In this document: positions 18,098-34,628 of the stretch, piece after piece
How the letters are laid out: each line of letters starts with the position of its first letter
Numbering within the stretch: position 1 is the first letter of the stretch
From: Piromyces finnis finn
Taxonomy: Eukaryota > Fungi > Neocallimastigomycota
Length of the DNA: 64,000 nucleotides
Direction: 5' to 3'
Assembly: GCA_002104945.1 (NCBI GenBank)
Contig: MCFH01000004.1
Location: forward strand, 682,001 to 746,000
Made by a program: the position numbers and the translations under genes
Notes under the pieces: model-generated
The model's input: the letters and a program-made list of their open reading frames with translations, nothing else
Told to the model about the DNA's origin: nothing
Databases searched by the model: none

Positions 18098-19702
18098 CTT
18101 GCCTCAACAATTTTATTTTTAATATAATTTTTCTTTTTTTTTTATTTTATTTTTTCTCCAATTGAATGTAAACTTCTTCGCCAATATTTCTTTCTTTATT
18201 TTTGTTTCCTTTTTTATAAAAACTAAATAATTTAGCTTTAAAAAACACAAATTAAGATAGTGTAATTGTGTTTTATTATAATAGAACAATAATTATGTGC
18301 TCTACAAAATTACTAAATGGGAATACAAAATATTTAACTATTTAATTTATAAATAATTAATAATTTGAATTTCAAAATAATTATAGATCATTTCTCTTTG
18401 TTTTATGTTCTAGTTATTAAGAGTATTATAAAAATACTATTTTATTGGAAATAAATTTAAAATATAATGGTGATTAGGAAATAATTTAACCTTGTTTAAT
18501 CTTATATTCCCAATAAAATAGTTCTACTCTTTTCGATTTTTTATTCTTTCCAATTATGAATATCTTAAATGTTATAAAAGTCTGGGTATTGTATGATTTA
18601 TCAATTCTACCTTTTCTTCAATAGAATCTTTATTTTAAAGTAAAATAAATATATACACAATTAATTTAAATAGTTGACATTGTAATAATTAAAATTTGAA
18701 TTTGTTTTAATAAAAAAAAATTAAAATTTTAAAATTTATTTAAATATAATAATTAAAGTTTGGATCGTTTATTGAAAATTTTTTATTATTCCATTATTTC
18801 ATTCATAAAAATTATAAAAATTGAAATGATAATAATTAAAGAAATAATATTAAAGGGAATAATATAAGGAAATAATAAATAAAAATAGCATCATTAAATG
18901 GTTAAATAAATCAATACCTATTTCAATCAAATAAAAAACAAGACTTATTTCATAATCTTCATACATAAAATACTAATTAATGTTAATATTGCTTATGAAA
19001 GCTACTTAATAATCTTGAATATTGAGTAAGACTTTTTTATTTCAATTATTAAATTCATATTGAATATATCAATACATAGGATCAATATTCAAAAGAACAA
19101 AAGAACGATTAAAAAAGAGTTAAAATGAATGTTAACCATCAATATATAATCACTTTTTTCTAATGCTTTATATGTACATTTAATACTTTTTAATAAGTAT
19201 TGCATAAGCTTTTAATTTATGAACTTGATCTTATTTAGTATTCTTATGTAGTTCTTTAAGGTCATTTTAATCACCGAGTTTTTTATACTTTAAAAAAAGA
19301 CGATACAGTGCAAGAAAGAATTGAATAAAGCTTCACTTTTTTATACCCTTCCTGGTCTTTTTTTTTTTAAAAACTGAAATTTTAAAAAGTTTAAAACTTA
19401 TCTTTTAACTTCATTTTATGCCAATCATATACATCTATAATATATGAATGAATATAATTCTAATTTATAAAATTAAAATTAAGAATAATTAAAACTTTTT
19501 TTTTTTAAAGATTATGTGTAAAAATGTGTATTAGTAAAATATCATAATTAATATATTTATCTAAATATATAAATATATTAAAATTAATTAAATAATATAT
19601 TAGGGAATAGTATTTAACATTAATTACAGAAATGAATAAATTCAAAAAAAAAAAAAAAAGTTTTTATTTTCAAATTCTTTTTTATTAAATAATTAAAGTA
19701 AA

Positions 19703-21070
19703 ATGTCTATTTTTACACCTATTAATCAATTAAAATTAACAAACGTTTCCGTTGTAAGATTAAAGAAAGGAGGAAAACGTTTTGAGATTGCTTGTTATAA
19801 AAATAAAGTATTAGAATGGAGAAAAAATGTGTATGTTTTTTATTAGGTTATTTGTAAAATAAATCAATTTTAAATTTATAATTAATATTTAGATATTGAC
19901 AATTTATTAAATTTAAACCCTTATTGTCTTTTATATATTTATTATTTTATTAGTGAAACAGATATTGATGAAGTTTTACAAATCCACAATGTATTCAATA
20001 ACGTATCAAAGGGTTTAACTTCTAAGAAAGATGATTTAGTTAAAGCTTTTAAAACTGATGACATTGAAAAAATTATTTTAGAAGTAATTATAAATAAAAT
20101 ATAATTTTATTAAAATATTAGACTTTAGGCACTTATTTATTTCATATATAATATTTCTTTTATATATATAATCTCTTTTAATATTTTTTTATGAATATTC
20201 ATTCTTTTAAATATTAAATACAATTTCAAAATCAATATAAAATATATATTATCAATAAAATAAAAATATTCTTATGAATTATAATTTTTTTTAAAAAAAA
20301 TAAAGATATTGAAAAAAGGAGAATTACAAGTTAGTGAAAAAGAACGAAACCAACAGATTTCGACAAAATATCGAGATATAGCAACAATTGTAGCCGAGAA
20401 ATGTGTTAATCCAGATACTAAAAGACCATACACTGTTACTATGATTGAAAAGGCCATGAATGATCTTCATTTCTCTGTCAATCCAAACAGAAATGCTAAA
20501 CAACAAGTAATATATAAAGCATTTTAAATTGAATTTTTAAACAATAATAATAGAAAGGAATTATTAATCATAATAATATAATAATTAAAATAATAATTAA
20601 AATAATTAAAAAAAAAGGCTTTAGATGTAATTCGTCAAATTCAAGAAAAGAATATTATGCCAATTGCTAGAGCTCAAATGCGTTTAAGAATAGCTTTACC
20701 AGCTAAGGAAGGCAAAAAGATAAAGGAAAAATTGTTATCTTTAATAGCTAATGTTGAAGATGAAGATTACTCTGATGGTTATGAATTGGTAATAAAAATA
20801 TGAATAAAAACAATATAAATTGACAAAATGGAAATATTAATAATATTATTTATTATTGTTTAATTGATTTTAACCTATTTCATATTATTGTTATTTCAAA
20901 AATAATGTATATTGATAATTATATATTTTATTCTTTAAAACTAGATTTGTGTTATTGATCCAGGAAACTTTAGAAATATTAGTGATTTAATTCAAAAGGA
21001 AACTAAAGGTAAATCTCAATTAGAACTCTTAAACTTAGCTGATACCCGTGAAGGTGACCAAAAATTCTAA
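19703..21070 (+). CDS. SDO1: Ribosome maturation factor SDO1/SBDS
   Basis: Exons 19703-19830, 19954-20083, 20306-20506, 20618-20788, 20945-21070: [36 protein letters not shown]...[14 protein letters not shown]...[22 protein letters not shown]...[14 protein letters not shown]...[10 protein letters not shown]. Confidence 0.98.
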
Positions 21071-21625: not shown

Positions 21626-22579
21626 TTATAAAAACAAAAAATATCCAATAGTAAATAATATGATTGAAATAATGTAAAATCTATATTTATGCATAAATGA
21701 AGGTTTAGGATTAGTATTCAAAAGTATATTTTCGTACTTTTCATCATAGGATATATCCTCTTCCCTATCATTCTCTTTTTCATTCGATAACACTTTTAAA
21801 AAGCCTTCAAGTGATTTTTGATTAAATCGCTGATAATTTTTCTTTTTTAGTATTTTATGATCATAATCATATTTATCTGTAATTATTTTTCTATCCTCAT
21901 TTTTAAATCGGTGTAAATGCTCTTTTTCTTCTTCATCATCTAAAATACAATTTATAACACCTCTGGCATAGGTAATAGTTTCATCCTCCTCTTCTTCCTC
22001 ATCACTAAATACGTAACCACGTCTTATATAATAACGAGAATCATTGCAATCTAAATCATCTTGATTATCTCCTATTTCAGTCAACATTTCTGTATTAAAC
22101 AAATCATTATGAAATTCTGTATCAAATAAATCTGAATTATAATATTCTTGCTCTATTGATGATTGATAGTTGTCATTATCATTATAATAATTATCATGTA
22201 TGCTTTCATTCTGAGAATTAAGCTTTCTTTGTTGTTCCTCAATCAATTTTAACATATTTCCTTGTTTTATACAATCTTCACAATATTTTTCATATTCTTC
22301 ATTTGTTAAAAAATCTCTACTACTTTTTAAAATTTCATTATGAAGTAAATTTTTAATTTCAGGTAAAAAATTTTCTATTAAAATACAATCTTGATATTTA
22401 CAGATAGGACAAAGGAAAGAACAAGATTTTGTAAACCATGAACAAATACAATTAAAATGATATGAATGACTACATGATAAAGAAATGATTGATGGTATAT
22501 ATGATGGATAATTGAAATTACTTTCTTTTAATGATTCAAGACAAATAGTACATATAACTTCATTTTTATTATTTGACAT
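21626..22579 (-). CDS. Intronless RING-H2 protein with C-terminal transmembrane anchor (putative E3 ligase)
   Basis: 317-aa single ORF. N-terminal CTIC...LSCSHSYHFNCICSW...CPIC (C3H2C3), acidic middle region, C-terminal FYIISIILFTIGYFLFL. Confidence 0.88.
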   Translation of the reverse strand: MSNNKNEVICTICLESLKESNFNYPSYIPSIISLSCSHSYHFNCICSWFTKSCSFLCPICKYQDCILIENFLPEIKNLLHNEILKSSRDFLTNEEYEKYCEDCIKQGNMLKLIEEQQRKLNSQNESIHDNYYNDNDNYQSSIEQEYYNSDLFDTEFHNDLFNTEMLTEIGDNQDDLDCNDSRYYIRRGYVFSDEEEEEDETITYARGVINCILDDEEEKEHLHRFKNEDRKIITDKYDYDHKILKKKNYQRFNQKSLEGFLKVLSNEKENDREEDISYDEKYENILLNTNPKPSFMHKYRFYIISIILFTIGYFLFL

Positions 22580-23062
22580 TGTTATTTATAAAATAAATAG
22601 CTGGTATATAAATATATAATTATTGCTAATAAATAAATAAATAAATAAATAAAAATGATTTCTATAATAAATATTTTGAGATTTGACTATTTAAATTTTA
22701 ATTGATGATTAAATATTAATACTTGTTAACAATAATAAATAGAAAATAAAGTATATTATACATTATCATGTATTCCTATTATACTTTTTATATAATTATT
22801 ATTATTATTATTTAAAATAATAATTATAATTTTATAGTAATTTTGAACGTTATTTAATTGTAAGAATTATTATATTTACTAATTACATTTCAATTTCAAT
22901 TCTGATGAAAAATCATTGTTTTTACAGAAATTTCATTATAGGGTCCATATATTTATAATATTTATAATATAAATATTGAAATATTGTGTACTAATGAAAT
23001 TGCAATATAATATAAATATAGAAATAATTGTACTAATATAAATTGCAATATTAAGAGAAAAG

Positions 23063-23094
<32 letters not shown>

Positions 23095-23450
23095 GATTTA
23101 AAATCTTTGAATACTTTTGTATTTTCAAAAGTTATCAAACTTTAATTCATTATTACCAATAATAATTTGAGAAATTTTATATTTATTTTAATTTTATTTA
23201 TAAATATAAATAAATATATAGACAACAATACACTATAAAATTTAACAATACTTCAACAAAAAAAAAAAAAAAAAAAAGGTGAAATGATAAAATTATATAT
23301 ATATATATTATTCATATAATAAAACTTTATAATTCAAGATAATTATTTGAAAATAAGAATTAAAATTATTAAAAAAATACTAAATTCAAATATTTTATAT
23401 TTAAATATAACATTTTAAACAATTATACCATACACCAATAACTAGTATAT

Positions 23451-23583
<133 letters not shown>

Positions 23584-23676
23584 TATTCTTTACATAATAC
23601 TTTATAAACTTCATTTATAAATATATTATAAATACATTAAATTAAATGAAATTTATAAAACATTTTTTATACTATA

Positions 23677-24264
23677 TTATTCAATCTTTAATCTGACAAT
23701 ATCATTTTCAGTGACATTATAAACATGTTTACCAATAATTGTTCTTACATTTCTAATATCTTGAATTTCTGGACTTGCAAATTCAATATATGAATGTTGA
23801 TTATCATTTTTGTTTTCTTCACTATAATCATCATAACAATAAACTGAAAATTCATCCAAGATATCTTCTAATGGGTATTGGGTAATAAATGCTTCAGAAG
23901 GCTCATTTTCTTCAAATTCAGGTTCTGGTTCATACATTATTGATGTAACATATAGCTCTTTCAAATCTTCCTCGATATATATAGTATAATCTTTTTCTAT
24001 TTGATTCTCATCTTCATCCTCTATTTCTCTATAATATCTTTTTCCATTATATTCAATAACATAAAAGGATTCTTCTCTTCCTGTTCCTAATGTCCAATCT
24101 TTTAAATCTCTAAGTGTTTTACTTAAAGCTTCATCTGAAATTCCTTTTAAACTTATACTATTTAATGATTTTTTTTCTAATGTTTTATAAATATGAGGTT
24201 CCACTAAAGTATATTCTTTTCCTTCAATATACTTTTTAGGTGTATAATCTCTAATATTTTTCAT
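23677..24264 (-). CDS. Intronless 195-aa acidic hypothetical protein, bacterial-like (HGT candidate)
   Basis: Uninterrupted ORF with complex, globular-looking sequence (LYVTSIMYEPEPEF...FITQYPLEDILDEF...SYIEFASPEIQDIRNVRTIIGKHVYN). An open frame of this length and complexity is unlikely by chance in such AT-rich DNA. No eukaryotic family recognised. Confidence 0.8.
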   Translation of the reverse strand: MKNIRDYTPKKYIEGKEYTLVEPHIYKTLEKKSLNSISLKGISDEALSKTLRDLKDWTLGTGREESFYVIEYNGKRYYREIEDEDENQIEKDYTIYIEEDLKELYVTSIMYEPEPEFEENEPSEAFITQYPLEDILDEFSVYCYDDYSEENKNDNQHSYIEFASPEIQDIRNVRTIIGKHVYNVTENDIVRLKIE

Positions 24265-27009: not shown

Positions 27010-27528
27010 TTTTTTTTAAAAAAATATAAAATATTTATTAAAAATACAATACTCTATGTATACTTAAAAAACATTAAAATAGTGTAATATATTTATATTA
27101 TGATAGCGTTTTAGTTTTTTTTTTTTGAAAATTCAAAAAAAGAAAAATTAAATCAATATCTTTAAAGATATATTGGTTTTAATTATTATTATTTTTAATT
27201 GAGTATATTTATTTTAAAATTTCAAATAATAATAATAATAACTTTAAAACAATTATATATATAAAAGCGGAAATAAAAAGAAATATTTTTTTTTAATTGT
27301 ATTAATTTAATTAGTTATTTCTCTCTATATTTTTAAGTTAAATTTAATTGTAATTTTTTAAGATTTGATAGTTTTGTCTTTATTATATATATATTTCTTC
27401 TTTATTTATAATACAGTTACGCTTTTACAATACAACAACAACTCATAAAATTAAAAAAAAAAAAAAAAAAATTATAATTTTGTTGATATTTATGTTAATA
27501 TAAAAATATATAAAATACACAAAACAAG

Positions 27529-28986
27529 ATGGATAGTCAAAAATCTGAATTTGACTTTGAATATCAAAACTCTCAATATGGTAGTATAGATAATTCAAAG
27601 CCATTAATATATCAAAAAAGTTATACATCTTCTATACAGTCACAACCATTTTCAAAAGTTAAATATGAAAGTTTAAATGAAATTCATTTAGATTTTTCAA
27701 AAGCCACATTTTTCAAAGATGGTCATAAAAGTGTTGGAAGTAATGGTAGCATAAACAATATTAATGGAAGTAAAAATTCAATTTTATCTTCATTATCAGA
27801 AAGTTTAAAGCAGAAAACAAAAAGTATTTCTTCAAACTTACCGGCTATCAATACGGATATTAATTCTTTAAATAAATCAAAAACTTCTCATACACCATCA
27901 ACAGACTCTACCATAGATTTACCTTTTCATAATAAAAATCTCCCAATTTCAATAGATACACCATTATCTGCTGTTAATTTATTTAAATCAATATTATCAC
28001 CAATAAGTAAAAATCAAAATGATTTTCAAGAAAGAGATATATCTTTTGATTATCAAAACGGATTTGTTGATAGTTTTGTTGATGATCAAAAGGATGATAC
28101 TCTAGCCGAAAATATTAATCCTAATATATCAATATTATCTTCTTCATCATTCGATTCAAAATCACAAACGTCAAACTTTAGAAGCTTCAAAACCTTTGAA
28201 CGTTTAAGAGATCAATTAGCACAAGAACAAATAAAGAATGAGACTCAGACTAGACATTTGAGGGAAAATATTATTCATAATCAATTTTCCGAACAATTTA
28301 GGAATGAATTTACTCATAAAGCACCTTCAATAAAAAGAGAAAATGCATTTTTAATTTCTTCCGGTAAAAATGATCCATTTAATCCTAATATTTTTTCCAA
28401 TGCAAAAACATCCCAAGAAGATGATGCAAATAATAACGAAAACCATTTCTTATCATCGGAGAGTAATGGTCATCATCGTAATAAACCCCTTAAATTTAAC
28501 TGGGCAATACAAACAGAATCTGAAAAATATATTAGTAAATTAGGTAAACAATAATAATAATAATAAATAAGTAAATAAATAAATACCATTATTTATTAAC
28601 ATTATTTTTTAAATCATCATATGATACAGAGTCAAAAATCAAAAAAATAAAAAAGGCGCCTAAAGAAATAATAGTGGAAATTCCAGACGATGGTAAAATA
28701 AAAGTTCATCATTATGTGTTATATATTTTTTTAATATAATAATTCTTATGAAATTTTATTATAATTTTTAGATTTTGATAATTATGCTTATGATTCTGTT
28801 ACTGAAGAATCAGAACTTTTATCAGACAGTGATTCAATTAATCAACCTTTAATTAGTCGTAGTGATGCTGGTAAGAAGTTAAGAAGAAGAAAGTACATTA
28901 TTCAAACATTGAGAGACAATAAAAATTTAATAATAGTTATTATACTAGCATTACTATTGGCTGTTATAGTTTTTCTTTTTTTATAA
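27529..28986 (+). CDS. Uncharacterised S/N-rich protein with C-terminal tail-anchor helix
   Basis: Long exon from 27529 to a GTAAAC donor near 28545, a short exon ~28631-28692, and a last exon ~28773-28986 ending KLRRRKYIIQTLRDNKNLIIVIILALLLAVIVFLFL*. Confidence 0.8.
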
Positions 28987-31966: not shown

Positions 31967-34628
31967 ATGACAAATTGTACAATAACTTCTGATGAAATAA
32001 ATTATCTTATATATAGATATTTAGTAGAATCAGGTAAGGATATCAAAATTTTTACTTTAAAAAATAAAATATAACAATATATATATATGTAATTAAAAAA
32101 ATAATGAAATTCTTTTTTCAAATAATTTTATATATTTTTTATTTATCTATTGAAAAATAATATCTAATTCATGTTAAATATATACTAATATTTAACAAAT
32201 TCATAAAAACTAGGCTTCAAACATACCAGTTTTATGTTTCAACATGAAACGCATATATTACAAAATAGTAATATAAAAACTGAAAATGTTAAACCAGGAG
32301 CATTAATACATTATTTACAAAAAGGTTTATTATATACAGAAGTTGAATACCACGCAAATGAAGTAAATAATTAATATAGTCATTTAAATATTTATTATAA
32401 CATAACATGTTTTAAATAAACAATACCAATTTTACATTTTATTAAATTTCAATATTCTTTTTATATATAAAATTTGTAAAAAAAAAAAAAAAAAAAAAAA
32501 ACTAAACAAAACAAAAATCAAAATAATGATAATGATAACAATAAAAGGATGGAACTGAAAAACATTGTATAGCACCATTTTCACTATTAACACCACATCA
32601 TTGTAAAACAGAAGAAGATGATGACGATAAAGACAATAATGACACAGACTATTCCATTAATACCTCTCTCAATAATAAATTATCAAATAATAAAAGAAAT
32701 AGAAAGGAAAGAAAAAGCGATATAAAAAGAGAAAGAAAATCGGATAAAAGAATTAAAAAAGACAATGATGAAAGTACAAAAGATTCATTAAATGAGTCAG
32801 AAGATATTGAAGTTGACATTGAAAATAGTAATAATGAACAGGAAACTAATTTAATATCACAAAAGGATATTGTCAACTTTGTTGGTAATGATACTTCAGT
32901 ATATGTATGTTCTTGGAATCCAGTTGAGCCATTATTAGCTACAGGGTTAATATTTTAATATACTATTATATACATTATATAGTACATTTATAAAATTTTA
33001 TTTATAAAATAACATTTTATAAAAAAATTTTTTTTCAATAATAATTAATATTCAAAAATTCTATTAATTATTTATATATTATATATTATATATTATATAT
33101 TATATTATTATATAGTTCTAAAGGAACTGCTAGTATATGGACTGTACCGGAATCACCAAATGATCCAATAAAACCACCTATCATTCTTGACCATAAACAA
33201 GATAATAAAGAAGTTCCTGATGTAACATCTATAGAATGGAATGTAAGTTTAATAAATATAAATGTGTTTAATAAACGAATTGTAAGATAAATAATAAAAA
33301 TAATAATTTATATATGATAATTTTATGTTTTATATAATAATAAAAATAAATACTCAATGTTTGATAATAAATAGCCATCTGGCACATTATTAGCTACTGG
33401 GGCTTATGATGGACTTGCTAGAATATGGAATAAATCTGGTCAATTAGTACACGTCTTGAAAAAACACACCTTACCAATATTTTCATTAAAATGGAATTTT
33501 GATGGTAACCTCTTCTTAACAGCAAGTGTTGATAAAACTGTTGTTATATGGGATAGTAGAATGGGTGAATTCCGTCAACAATATAGTTTCCATTCAGGTA
33601 TATATTTAAATAATATTCATAGTAATTATTTCTTTCTTTTTATAGTTCATGCTTTAAATTAATATATATATATATTGTTTTTTTTCTTAATTATTAGGAC
33701 CTGTTATGGATGTTGATTGGAAAGATAATACCACATTTGCATCTTGTTCAACAGATAAACAAATTCTTGTATGCCAATTAGGATCTTTAAAACCTCTAAA
33801 ACGATTCATAGGACATGAAGTAAGAAATTTAAATAATTATAAAAAATTATAAAAAAGAATTTTTTATATTTAATTTAAATTAATAATATATATATATATT
33901 TATAGGATGAAGTTAATATTATAAAATGGGATCCAGAGAGCTCATTGTTGGCTTCATGCTCAGATGATAGAACAGCTTGTGTTTGGAGTTTAGATCAAGA
34001 TGATCCAATTTGTACATTAAAAGAACATAAGAAAGAAATATATACAATAAAATGGTGTCCAAATTCTACAAAGACTAAAATATTAGCAACGTAAATATTT
34101 TATCATAATAATTTATAAATGAATACTTTTTTTATAAATAATTAAATATTAAAATAATCCCATTTTTTTACCATAATAAAATTATATGTATAAATATAGA
34201 GCATCCTTTGATTGTACTATTAAATTATGGGATGTAATGAATAACATTTGTTTATATACACTTCGAGACCATAATGAAGCTGTCTATTCCGTTTCATTTA
34301 GTCCAAATGGATTATACCTTGCCAGTGGTTCATTTGACCAACACTTAAATGTTTGGTCTGTTGAGGTAAGTTAAAATTATAAAAGGAAATTTTGAATTTT
34401 AATAAAATAATGTAAATATAGATATATTAAATTTAAATTTCATTGTACATTAAAAAAATGTTAGACTGGTACATTAATGAAAACATATATTGGTGAAAGT
34501 GGAATATTTGAAACTTCATATAATAAGAAAGGAGATAAAATCGCAGTTTGTTTTGCAAATTGTGAAGTAAGTATAAATATATATATATATATAATTTATT
34601 TTAATCATTTTTAATATAAAATAAAAGC

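Follow-up and report, generated by a model that had tools for sequence, protein, structure and literature searches.

A bacterial gene of an uncharacterized family domesticated by anaerobic gut fungi

We examined a 64-kb stretch of the genome of the anaerobic gut fungus Piromyces finnis (GenBank assembly GCA_002104945.1, contig MCFH01000004.1, positions 682,001 to 746,000; hereafter the window), and in it a gene for a 195-amino-acid protein that an original prediction, made from the sequence alone, had proposed as a horizontally acquired bacterial gene. The evidence supports this reading, which was essentially correct: the gene is bacterial in origin, has been domesticated by gut fungi, and belongs to an uncharacterized family. 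As predicted, the protein is encoded by an uninterrupted open reading frame (ORF) from ATG to stop, to which we add the strand (minus), left unstated before. Upstream of the ATG, the stop-free frame continues for only nine codons. The window is extremely AT-rich (17.8% GC), in keeping with an anaerobic gut fungus, and at this composition about one codon in ten (10%) should be a stop; 50 shuffles of the window gave longest open frames of 93 codons on average and 126 at most, and the expected number of 195-codon open frames arising by chance is about 1.6e-5. The GC content of the gene at codon positions 1, 2, and 3 (0.40, 0.25, and 0.11) is a clear coding signature, and the ORF is confirmed as a real gene. 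Its product was also correctly described as acidic and rich in tyrosine, glutamate, and isoleucine, with 31 Glu, 20 Ile, 18 Tyr, and 15 Asp residues, a net charge of -22, and an isoelectric point (pI) of 4.5.

The gene lies among eukaryotic genes whose order is shared with other gut fungi (Table 1). The original prediction set it apart as intronless in a region where nearly every other gene is spliced, which overstates the difference: the nearby SBDS gene is indeed split, and the window also holds uninterrupted frames of 530, 346, 341, and 319 codons, the adjacent RING-finger gene included. The 346-codon frame (27514-28551, plus strand) is homologous to a 474-amino-acid Anaeromyces gene and appears to be a conserved gut-fungal gene without an assigned role. 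The RING-finger gene, itself intronless, combines a conserved RING domain with a poorly conserved acidic tail and lies beside the acquired gene in each of the three fungal genera compared below. No paralogue of the 195-amino-acid gene was found within the window. About 90 bp past its stop codon, in the probable 3' region, is a (TATT)n microsatellite of 34.8 copies with 99% matches (23446-23584), and further downstream of this a poly(A) run of 35 bases (23058-23092).

Table 1. Features of the acquired gene and of its conserved neighbors, in positions of the window.
Feature	Coordinates	Strand	Evidence
Bacterial-derived gene, complete single-exon coding sequence, 195 codons plus stop	23677..24264	-	ORF listing; collinear with bacterial homologues from M1 to E195
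N-terminal segment of conserved core, residues ~1-28 (MKNIR strand, short helix, beta hairpin)	24181..24264	-	Present in long and short bacterial forms
Inserted module, residues ~29-103, with invariant W57 and Y77	23956..24180	-	"Long" family members only
C-terminal core domain (alpha/beta), residues ~104-195, most conserved part of family	23680..23955	-	Conserved blocks; pLDDT >90
Invariant acidic loop and helix, residues 112-139 (E-P-E-P-E ... E-N-x-P-S ... Q-Y-P-L-E-D-I-L-D)	23848..23931	-	Most conserved element
RING-finger gene, directly downstream of the acquired gene, synteny anchor	21626..22579	-	Pfam zf-RING_2, 2.2e-6
SBDS gene, spliced, five exon blocks, synteny anchor	19700..21067	+	SBDS_N and SBDS domain II matched exon by exon (Pfam)
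Homologue of the 474-amino-acid Anaeromyces gene, upstream of the acquired gene, synteny anchor	27529..28920	+	tblastn segments at 42-66% identity; no Pfam family
LisH/WD40 gene (part), outer synteny anchor	31967..32946	+	79-94% identity to the LisH/WD40 gene of the Anaeromyces locus (L099)

The description of the protein as an orphan did not survive a wider search. A word-index search of 5.8 billion proteins returned 188 homologues and a full-length match to a Bacillota family. Best matches to widespread eukaryotic proteins with a congruent phylogeny had been named as evidence that would speak against a bacterial origin; all organism-named matches were to Bacillota or to anaerobic gut fungi. 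The fungal ones confirmed that the gene is present in other Neocallimastigomycota, with orthologues in Piromyces sp. E2 (67-70% identity, the nearest), Anaeromyces robustus (56%), and Neocallimastix (46%). Many of the bacterial homologues are 185-200 amino acids long and align over their full length at 45-54% identity, the named ones being from Eubacterium, Ruminococcus, Bacilli, and Lachnospira. In a scan of one genome per prokaryotic species, relatives were encoded in 192 bacterial species, and the 80 of these that were listed are all of Bacillota type, mostly rumen or gut Lachnospiraceae, Ruminococcus, Eubacterium, Streptococcus, and Veillonella. An exhaustive profile search of 1.84 billion representatives gave only 287 clusters, indicating that the family is small and narrowly distributed. 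Neither these clusters nor the named matches of the word-index search included any eukaryote other than gut fungi.

In a maximum-likelihood tree, the seven fungal or fungal-type sequences form one clade (ultrafast bootstrap 98, Shimodaira-Hasegawa-like approximate likelihood ratio test 95), which is sister (97/84 on the same measures) to a clade whose 24 members include Eubacterium ruminantium, Lachnospira multipara, Lachnobacterium bovis, Agathobacter, and Coprococcus. The closest relatives of the fungal copy are thus shown to be of Lachnospiraceae/Eubacterium type, in agreement with the proposal of a rumen-bacterial hypothetical protein retained by the fungus. When bacterial short forms, described below, were added to the tree, the fungal clade was still deeply nested, eleven nodes from a root placed among divergent short forms; this nesting indicates that the direction of transfer was from bacterium to fungus. 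No clear diagnostic poly(A) tail was seen on two short fungal-type contigs, L018 and L102. GC content at third codon positions is 9-15% in the fungal copies and 11-19% in host ORFs, against a bacterial median of 33%, so the transfer is old and the gene fully ameliorated to its host.

The fungal gene is under purifying selection. Among five fungal sequences, the pairwise ratio of nonsynonymous to synonymous substitution rates (dN/dS, NG86 method) ranged from 0.27 to 0.53 and was below 1 in all ten pairs, dS being hard to estimate at 10% GC in third positions. The gene evolves much faster than its neighbors, with 46-70% identity between fungal genera where SBDS exon blocks show 90-100%. Such fast evolution, together with dN/dS values of up to 0.5 that indicate relaxed constraint, is what might be expected if the fungal copy were a functionless relic whose frame has stayed open by chance or under weak constraint. 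We consider this very improbable, since none of the five fungal coding sequences or of two additional predicted proteins is truncated, each beginning at the same methionine and ending at the same glutamate, in DNA of 15-18% GC where about 10% of codons would be stops. All fungal copies also keep the residues that are invariant across the family, in addition to dN/dS remaining below 1 throughout.

The position of the gene is conserved as well. The protein of the window is encoded on a 1.48-Mb contig, and the contigs carrying the gene in three assemblies span 0.22-2.4 Mb. The orthologues in A. robustus (locus L099, 14.5% GC) and Neocallimastix lanati (L100, 18% GC) are flanked by eukaryotic genes, and six-frame segments of both loci map collinearly to the window in the order LisH/WD40 gene, 474-amino-acid gene, acquired gene, RING-finger gene, and SBDS. 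Over its first ~130 residues, the RING-finger gene shows 59-65% identity to its positional counterparts in Anaeromyces and Neocallimastix, and the SBDS exon blocks are those already noted as 90-100% identical to the two loci. A locus common to three independent assemblies excludes contamination and chimeric joins, disposing of the possibility of a join artefact that had been raised for this region, and places the gene in the common ancestor of these fungi. Explanations without any transfer, whether contamination, chimeric assembly, or the loss of an ancient eukaryotic gene from all other lineages, can draw on only a general caveat about interkingdom transfer claims at less than 70% identity (10.1101/2020.10.15.341461). 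They are effectively refuted by the shared position between intron-bearing eukaryotic genes, by the host-like codon usage, by the absence of other eukaryotes from the searches above, and by the nesting of the fungal clade within one bacterial phylum.

The gene thus has the marks of a xenologue acquired by horizontal gene transfer, with fungal sequences nested in a bacterial clade and integration in native chromosomal DNA. Almost certainly, a complete bacterial gene was taken up once by the ancestor of crown gut fungi from a rumen member of the Bacillota and has since descended vertically, acquiring fungal codon usage and remaining under purifying selection. The acquired gene was integrated between the RING-finger gene and the 474-amino-acid gene, near SBDS.

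Anaerobic gut fungi are known to carry hundreds of bacterial genes. One more is not surprising, given that number and given that this transfer is itself not new, having already been catalogued. Cluster_331 in the supplement to Ciach et al., 2024 (PMC11291939, supplementary table) includes ORX84174.1 from A. robustus, ORY60417.1 from N. californiae, and ORX58483.1 from P. finnis, all classed as "hgt" with donor taxid 186802 (Eubacteriales); this is the same gene family, entered in a catalogue that gives no function, family description, or synteny. We found no paper discussing the protein itself when the literature was searched by locus tags and accessions, the fungal orthologues being ORX84174.1, OUM56537.1, and ORY60417.1. 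The three species of Cluster_331 stand as three separate rows, and the same study describes one tree with three fungal subtrees, reading multi-subtree trees as repeated transfers (PMC11291939); that tree is probably the one for Cluster_331. Synteny and the monophyly of the fungal sequences favor a single ancestral transfer over the apparently separate subtrees of the catalogue. What is new here is this evidence for one acquisition at a fixed locus, where the catalogue has separate species rows. To it we add a first description of the bacterial family, which comprises about 290 clusters built on a core of ~125 residues with or without a 75-residue insert and has no Pfam model and no recognizable fold, and a functional lead, in that some of its members are carried in arrays of immunity genes within mobile elements.

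An alignment of 56 family members is collinear from the M-K-N-I-R start to the L-x-I-E end, with 21 columns invariant across fungi and bacteria, 34 nearly invariant, and a mean column identity of 58%. The three motif-like blocks singled out in the original prediction are present in the translation and coincide with the most conserved blocks of this alignment. The whole family is acidic (median pI 4.26). Short forms of ~125 amino acids make up about half of the bacterial members; they match the family profile in two stretches and correspond to long-form residues ~1-27 joined directly to ~105-195, identifying the residues in between (~29-103) as an inserted module. Because some short forms nest within long-form clades, the insert must have been gained or lost more than once. 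In the N-terminal segment, M1, K2, I4, and Y12 are invariant, and the AlphaFold model places strands at residues 2-6, 19-22, and 25-29. The C-terminal core, found in about 36 bacterial short-form loci, carries the conserved blocks YVTSI, SQYPLEDILD, EF, and IGKHVYN and the terminal L-x-I-E. Its acidic loop and helix (residues 112-139) hold the invariant E114, P115, E119, Q129, Y130, P131, and D134 and, going by this conservation, are a candidate binding or active surface.

The prediction that no function could be named for the protein was borne out. Searches of Pfam, NCBIfam, PADLOC, PHROGs, and PDB sequences gave nothing above threshold for the 195-amino-acid protein, either as a single sequence or as a profile, and a Pfam scan at E-values up to 10 gave only a sub-threshold match to PAS_GdpP. 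Two confident structural models were likewise without a structural relative. An AlphaFold2 model of the full-length protein with the family alignment as input reached a predicted local distance difference test score (pLDDT) of 92.2 and a predicted template modeling score (pTM) of 0.81, and the short form was modeled as a compact alpha/beta domain (pLDDT 94.1, pTM 0.87). For the full-length model, the best E-value of Foldseek against the PDB was 0.65, the best score of a wide VIA-align search was Z 5.3, and TM-scores in the atlas did not exceed 0.38; for the short core, the best VIA-align score was Z 5.6 and Foldseek E-values were 0.42 or higher. All of these structure scores fall within noise, which for VIA-align is stated as Z 7-8. 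An ESM Atlas feature search yielded no usable match. The weak structural neighbors are generic alpha/beta sandwiches of RRM/KH/ACT, BMC, and type III secretion system (T3SS)-chaperone/YbjN kinds. The commonest for both models are T3SS-chaperone/YbjN-like and ferredoxin-like (RRM/KH/ACT) sandwiches, at Z 4.2-5.0 over 60-85 residues. The T3SS-chaperone/YbjN-like fold in particular scores Z 4.5-4.9, below the noise level of the tool, with a root-mean-square deviation of 2.8-3.8 over ~80 residues and no sequence signal. Judged from the models, the likeness to both kinds of fold is probably one of general topology rather than a sign of relationship.

Bacterial members usually sit in co-directional runs of unrelated small or medium-sized genes, and their large upstream neighbors are housekeeping genes such as RNB/S1 or tRNA-synt_2/GAD. 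We clustered 1,332 neighboring ORFs from 80 loci and took a Pfam census of 95 co-directional adjacent neighbors at 73 loci, considering the 25 commonest of 114 families. A conserved operon partner was rejected, as the best neighbor cluster occurred at only 11 of 73 loci and at scattered positions. The gene is solitary, and the suggestion that it might belong to an undescribed system has to be dropped.

A subset of members has surroundings of the immunity type. P0074, with 379 collection blocks the most widely observed of the bacterial members, belongs to a co-directional array of ~22 genes (L001:541-11943 and L103-L105, metagenome contigs) that includes Imm33, SMI1_KNR4/SUKH_6, GAD-like+T6SS_Tdi1_C, two DUF6985 genes, DUF4299, DUF3916, TPR, and many unannotated genes, none of which was named by an NCBIfam search. 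One gene of this array is indexed in 793 collection blocks. The surrounding region resembles a conjugative element, with RadC, DUF2958, methylases (MT-A70 and cytosine), a sortase, and a TED/SpaA adhesin upstream and an XRE helix-turn-helix (HTH) gene, sigma70_r4, and HTH_17 downstream. A second member, P0018, follows two genes for DUF6572, a conserved C-terminal region of type VII secretion system (T7SSb) immunity proteins found downstream of LXG toxins (PMC12558993, PMC13253547); transposase genes are nearby, as are GmrSD, FRG, and Mrr genes at one P0018 locus. At L087, a DUF1266-Imm33 protein is encoded directly upstream of a short form, and the -1 neighbor at L075 has the same length (354 amino acids). 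Homologues of island genes were found near a family member in 11 of 80 species loci, by raw count. Rare fusions join a ~95-residue core to DUF6985 (twice), BspA-type leucine-rich repeats (LRRs), DUF4272, or an XRE HTH (P0225, P0212, P0175, P0170, and P0150); these members include a fusion of the core with both BspA-type LRRs and DUF6985. Remote homology to DUF6985, the recurring neighbor, was rejected (hhalign probability 0.3%). The genomic contexts of the HTH-core and core-LRR-DUF6985 fusions, on short contigs, were uninformative, apart from an integrase fragment adjoining the HTH_3-core fusion.

These settings could also be read to mean that the family is mobile-element cargo in phage or plasmid conflict (defense or anti-defense), or a sensor or partner domain of XRE regulators, with the fungal copy put to an unrelated regulatory use. 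The conjugative-element-like surroundings of P0074, the transposase, GmrSD, FRG, and Mrr genes near P0018, and the integrase fragment beside the HTH_3 fusion are all in keeping with such cargo, and a strongly acidic protein could mimic nucleic acid. We regard this explanation as quite unlikely: PADLOC and PHROGs gave no match, most loci are chromosomal and without defense genes, and a phage-directed role offers no obvious reason for the fungi to have retained the gene over tens of millions of years.

The reading we favor, with a probability of about 0.4, is that the protein acts as a stand-alone protective binder of the orphan-immunity type. For polymorphic-toxin immunity proteins we follow the usage of Zhang et al., 2012, as other authors cite it. 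The reading is favored because the protein is small, acidic, and cytoplasmic and has no partner gene, and because the family is patchy, mobile, and recurrently found in, or fused to, components of immunity arrays. The product would be an alpha/beta protein of the cytoplasm, small and strongly acidic, working by itself and neutralizing by direct binding a toxin delivered by neighboring Firmicutes, such as a T7SS/LXG-class or other polymorphic toxin, with the acidic loop and helix of residues 112-139 as the likely contact surface. Such a function would carry over unchanged to a fungus that faces these same toxins, in line with the proposal made for the immunity protein PoNi.

Several observations weigh against an immunity role. 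The mean column identity of the family is high for an immunity family, and searches of Pfam, NCBIfam, and PADLOC, like the structure searches, showed no likeness to a known immunity family. GNAT acetyltransferases lead the adjacent families (10 of 95), followed by 2H/LigT phosphoesterases (5 of 95). No toxin domain occurs among the 25 commonest adjacent families, nor within this census was a member seen directly downstream of a toxin gene, although rare cases are possible. At about 60 of the loci, no recognizable immunity or toxin family lies within 10 kb. Immunity-family genes like those beside P0074, P0018, and L087 are, by raw count, absent from most loci, and several Ruminococcus, Lachnospiraceae, and Streptococcus loci are ordinary chromosomal accessory slots without immunity or toxin genes. 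In the Streptococcus slot of the short form, for instance, the order is TatD, RNase M5, GNAT, the family member, DUF1697, WYL, and GyrI-like, with no gene of either kind. This slot, a variable accessory one that follows TatD and RNase M5, is common to three Streptococcus species (L064, L078, and L090).

The same neighborhoods bear on the main rival explanation, that the protein acts on its own in protection against stress or xenobiotics, as a small-molecule binder or an unrecognized enzyme kept for tolerance of a rumen metabolite or antimicrobial. Most bacterial contexts are generic accessory arrays, often with GNAT acetyltransferases and other genes of detoxification type. The lead of GNAT among the neighbors is joined by MatE, MFS/TetR, ABC/FtsX, VanZ, AAA_33, His_Phos, NUDIX, isochorismatase, GrpB, abhydrolase, DUF1697, and GyrI-like contexts, and polar residues are unusually well conserved, many of them being invariant (E114, E119, D134, N151, E161, and K179, with H180 near-invariant), which would suit an active site or a ligand-binding one. 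If bacteria and fungi shared the ligand or substrate, function without a bacterial partner would be accounted for. We find this explanation doubtful, as neither the sequence nor the structure searches matched an enzyme family or fold, no neighboring pathway is conserved, and the fusions are to domains of protein interaction or immunity islands, none of them catalytic.

Should the orphan-immunity reading be true, it would lend weight to the view that contact-dependent toxins of bacteria shape the evolution of rumen fungi and would provide a handle for finding the toxin. A further step, rather speculative in our view, is that the family is a structurally new class of toxin immunity, in which case its persistence at one locus across anaerobic gut fungi would imply that these fungi are attacked by rumen Firmicutes with a delivered toxin acting in the cytoplasm, for example of the T7SS/LXG kind. 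A new domain-family entry and structure determination are both reasonable to consider for this family.

The closest parallel is PoNi (DUF1911), an immunity gene acquired by gut fungi from Ruminococcus, reported in a preprint that also mentions an Imm51 homologue in Caecomyces (Rizvi et al., 2020; 10.1101/2020.10.15.341461). Fungal PoNi, for which protection against bacterial contact-dependent toxins was proposed, shares with the present gene an intronless structure, a length of ~200 amino acids, a rumen Firmicutes donor, presence in several genera, and a place among native intron-bearing genes. It differs in having an experimentally verified bacterial toxin partner (PoNe) and in being more than 70% identical to its donor, compared with 45-54% for the present gene, whose product matches no Pfam family, DUF1911 included, and therefore belongs to a family distinct from PoNi. 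If the immunity reading holds, gut fungi would here have gained one more bacterial immunity gene by a separate acquisition, after PoNi and the Caecomyces Imm51 homologue, which would suggest a general fungal strategy of capturing such genes.

The second comparison is with the orphan or poly-immunity arrays of polymorphic toxin systems. Some members of the present family sit in long co-directional runs of unrelated small genes, among them Imm33, SUKH/SMI1_KNR4, Tdi1_C, and DUF6572, on a conjugative-element-like region. Most members lie outside such arrays, no cognate toxin was seen at the loci surveyed, and the family is not a named Imm family. The mobile-element-borne "acquired interbacterial defense" clusters are known from Bacteroidales. 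The P0074 array resembles a Firmicutes counterpart of such mobile orphan-immunity clusters.

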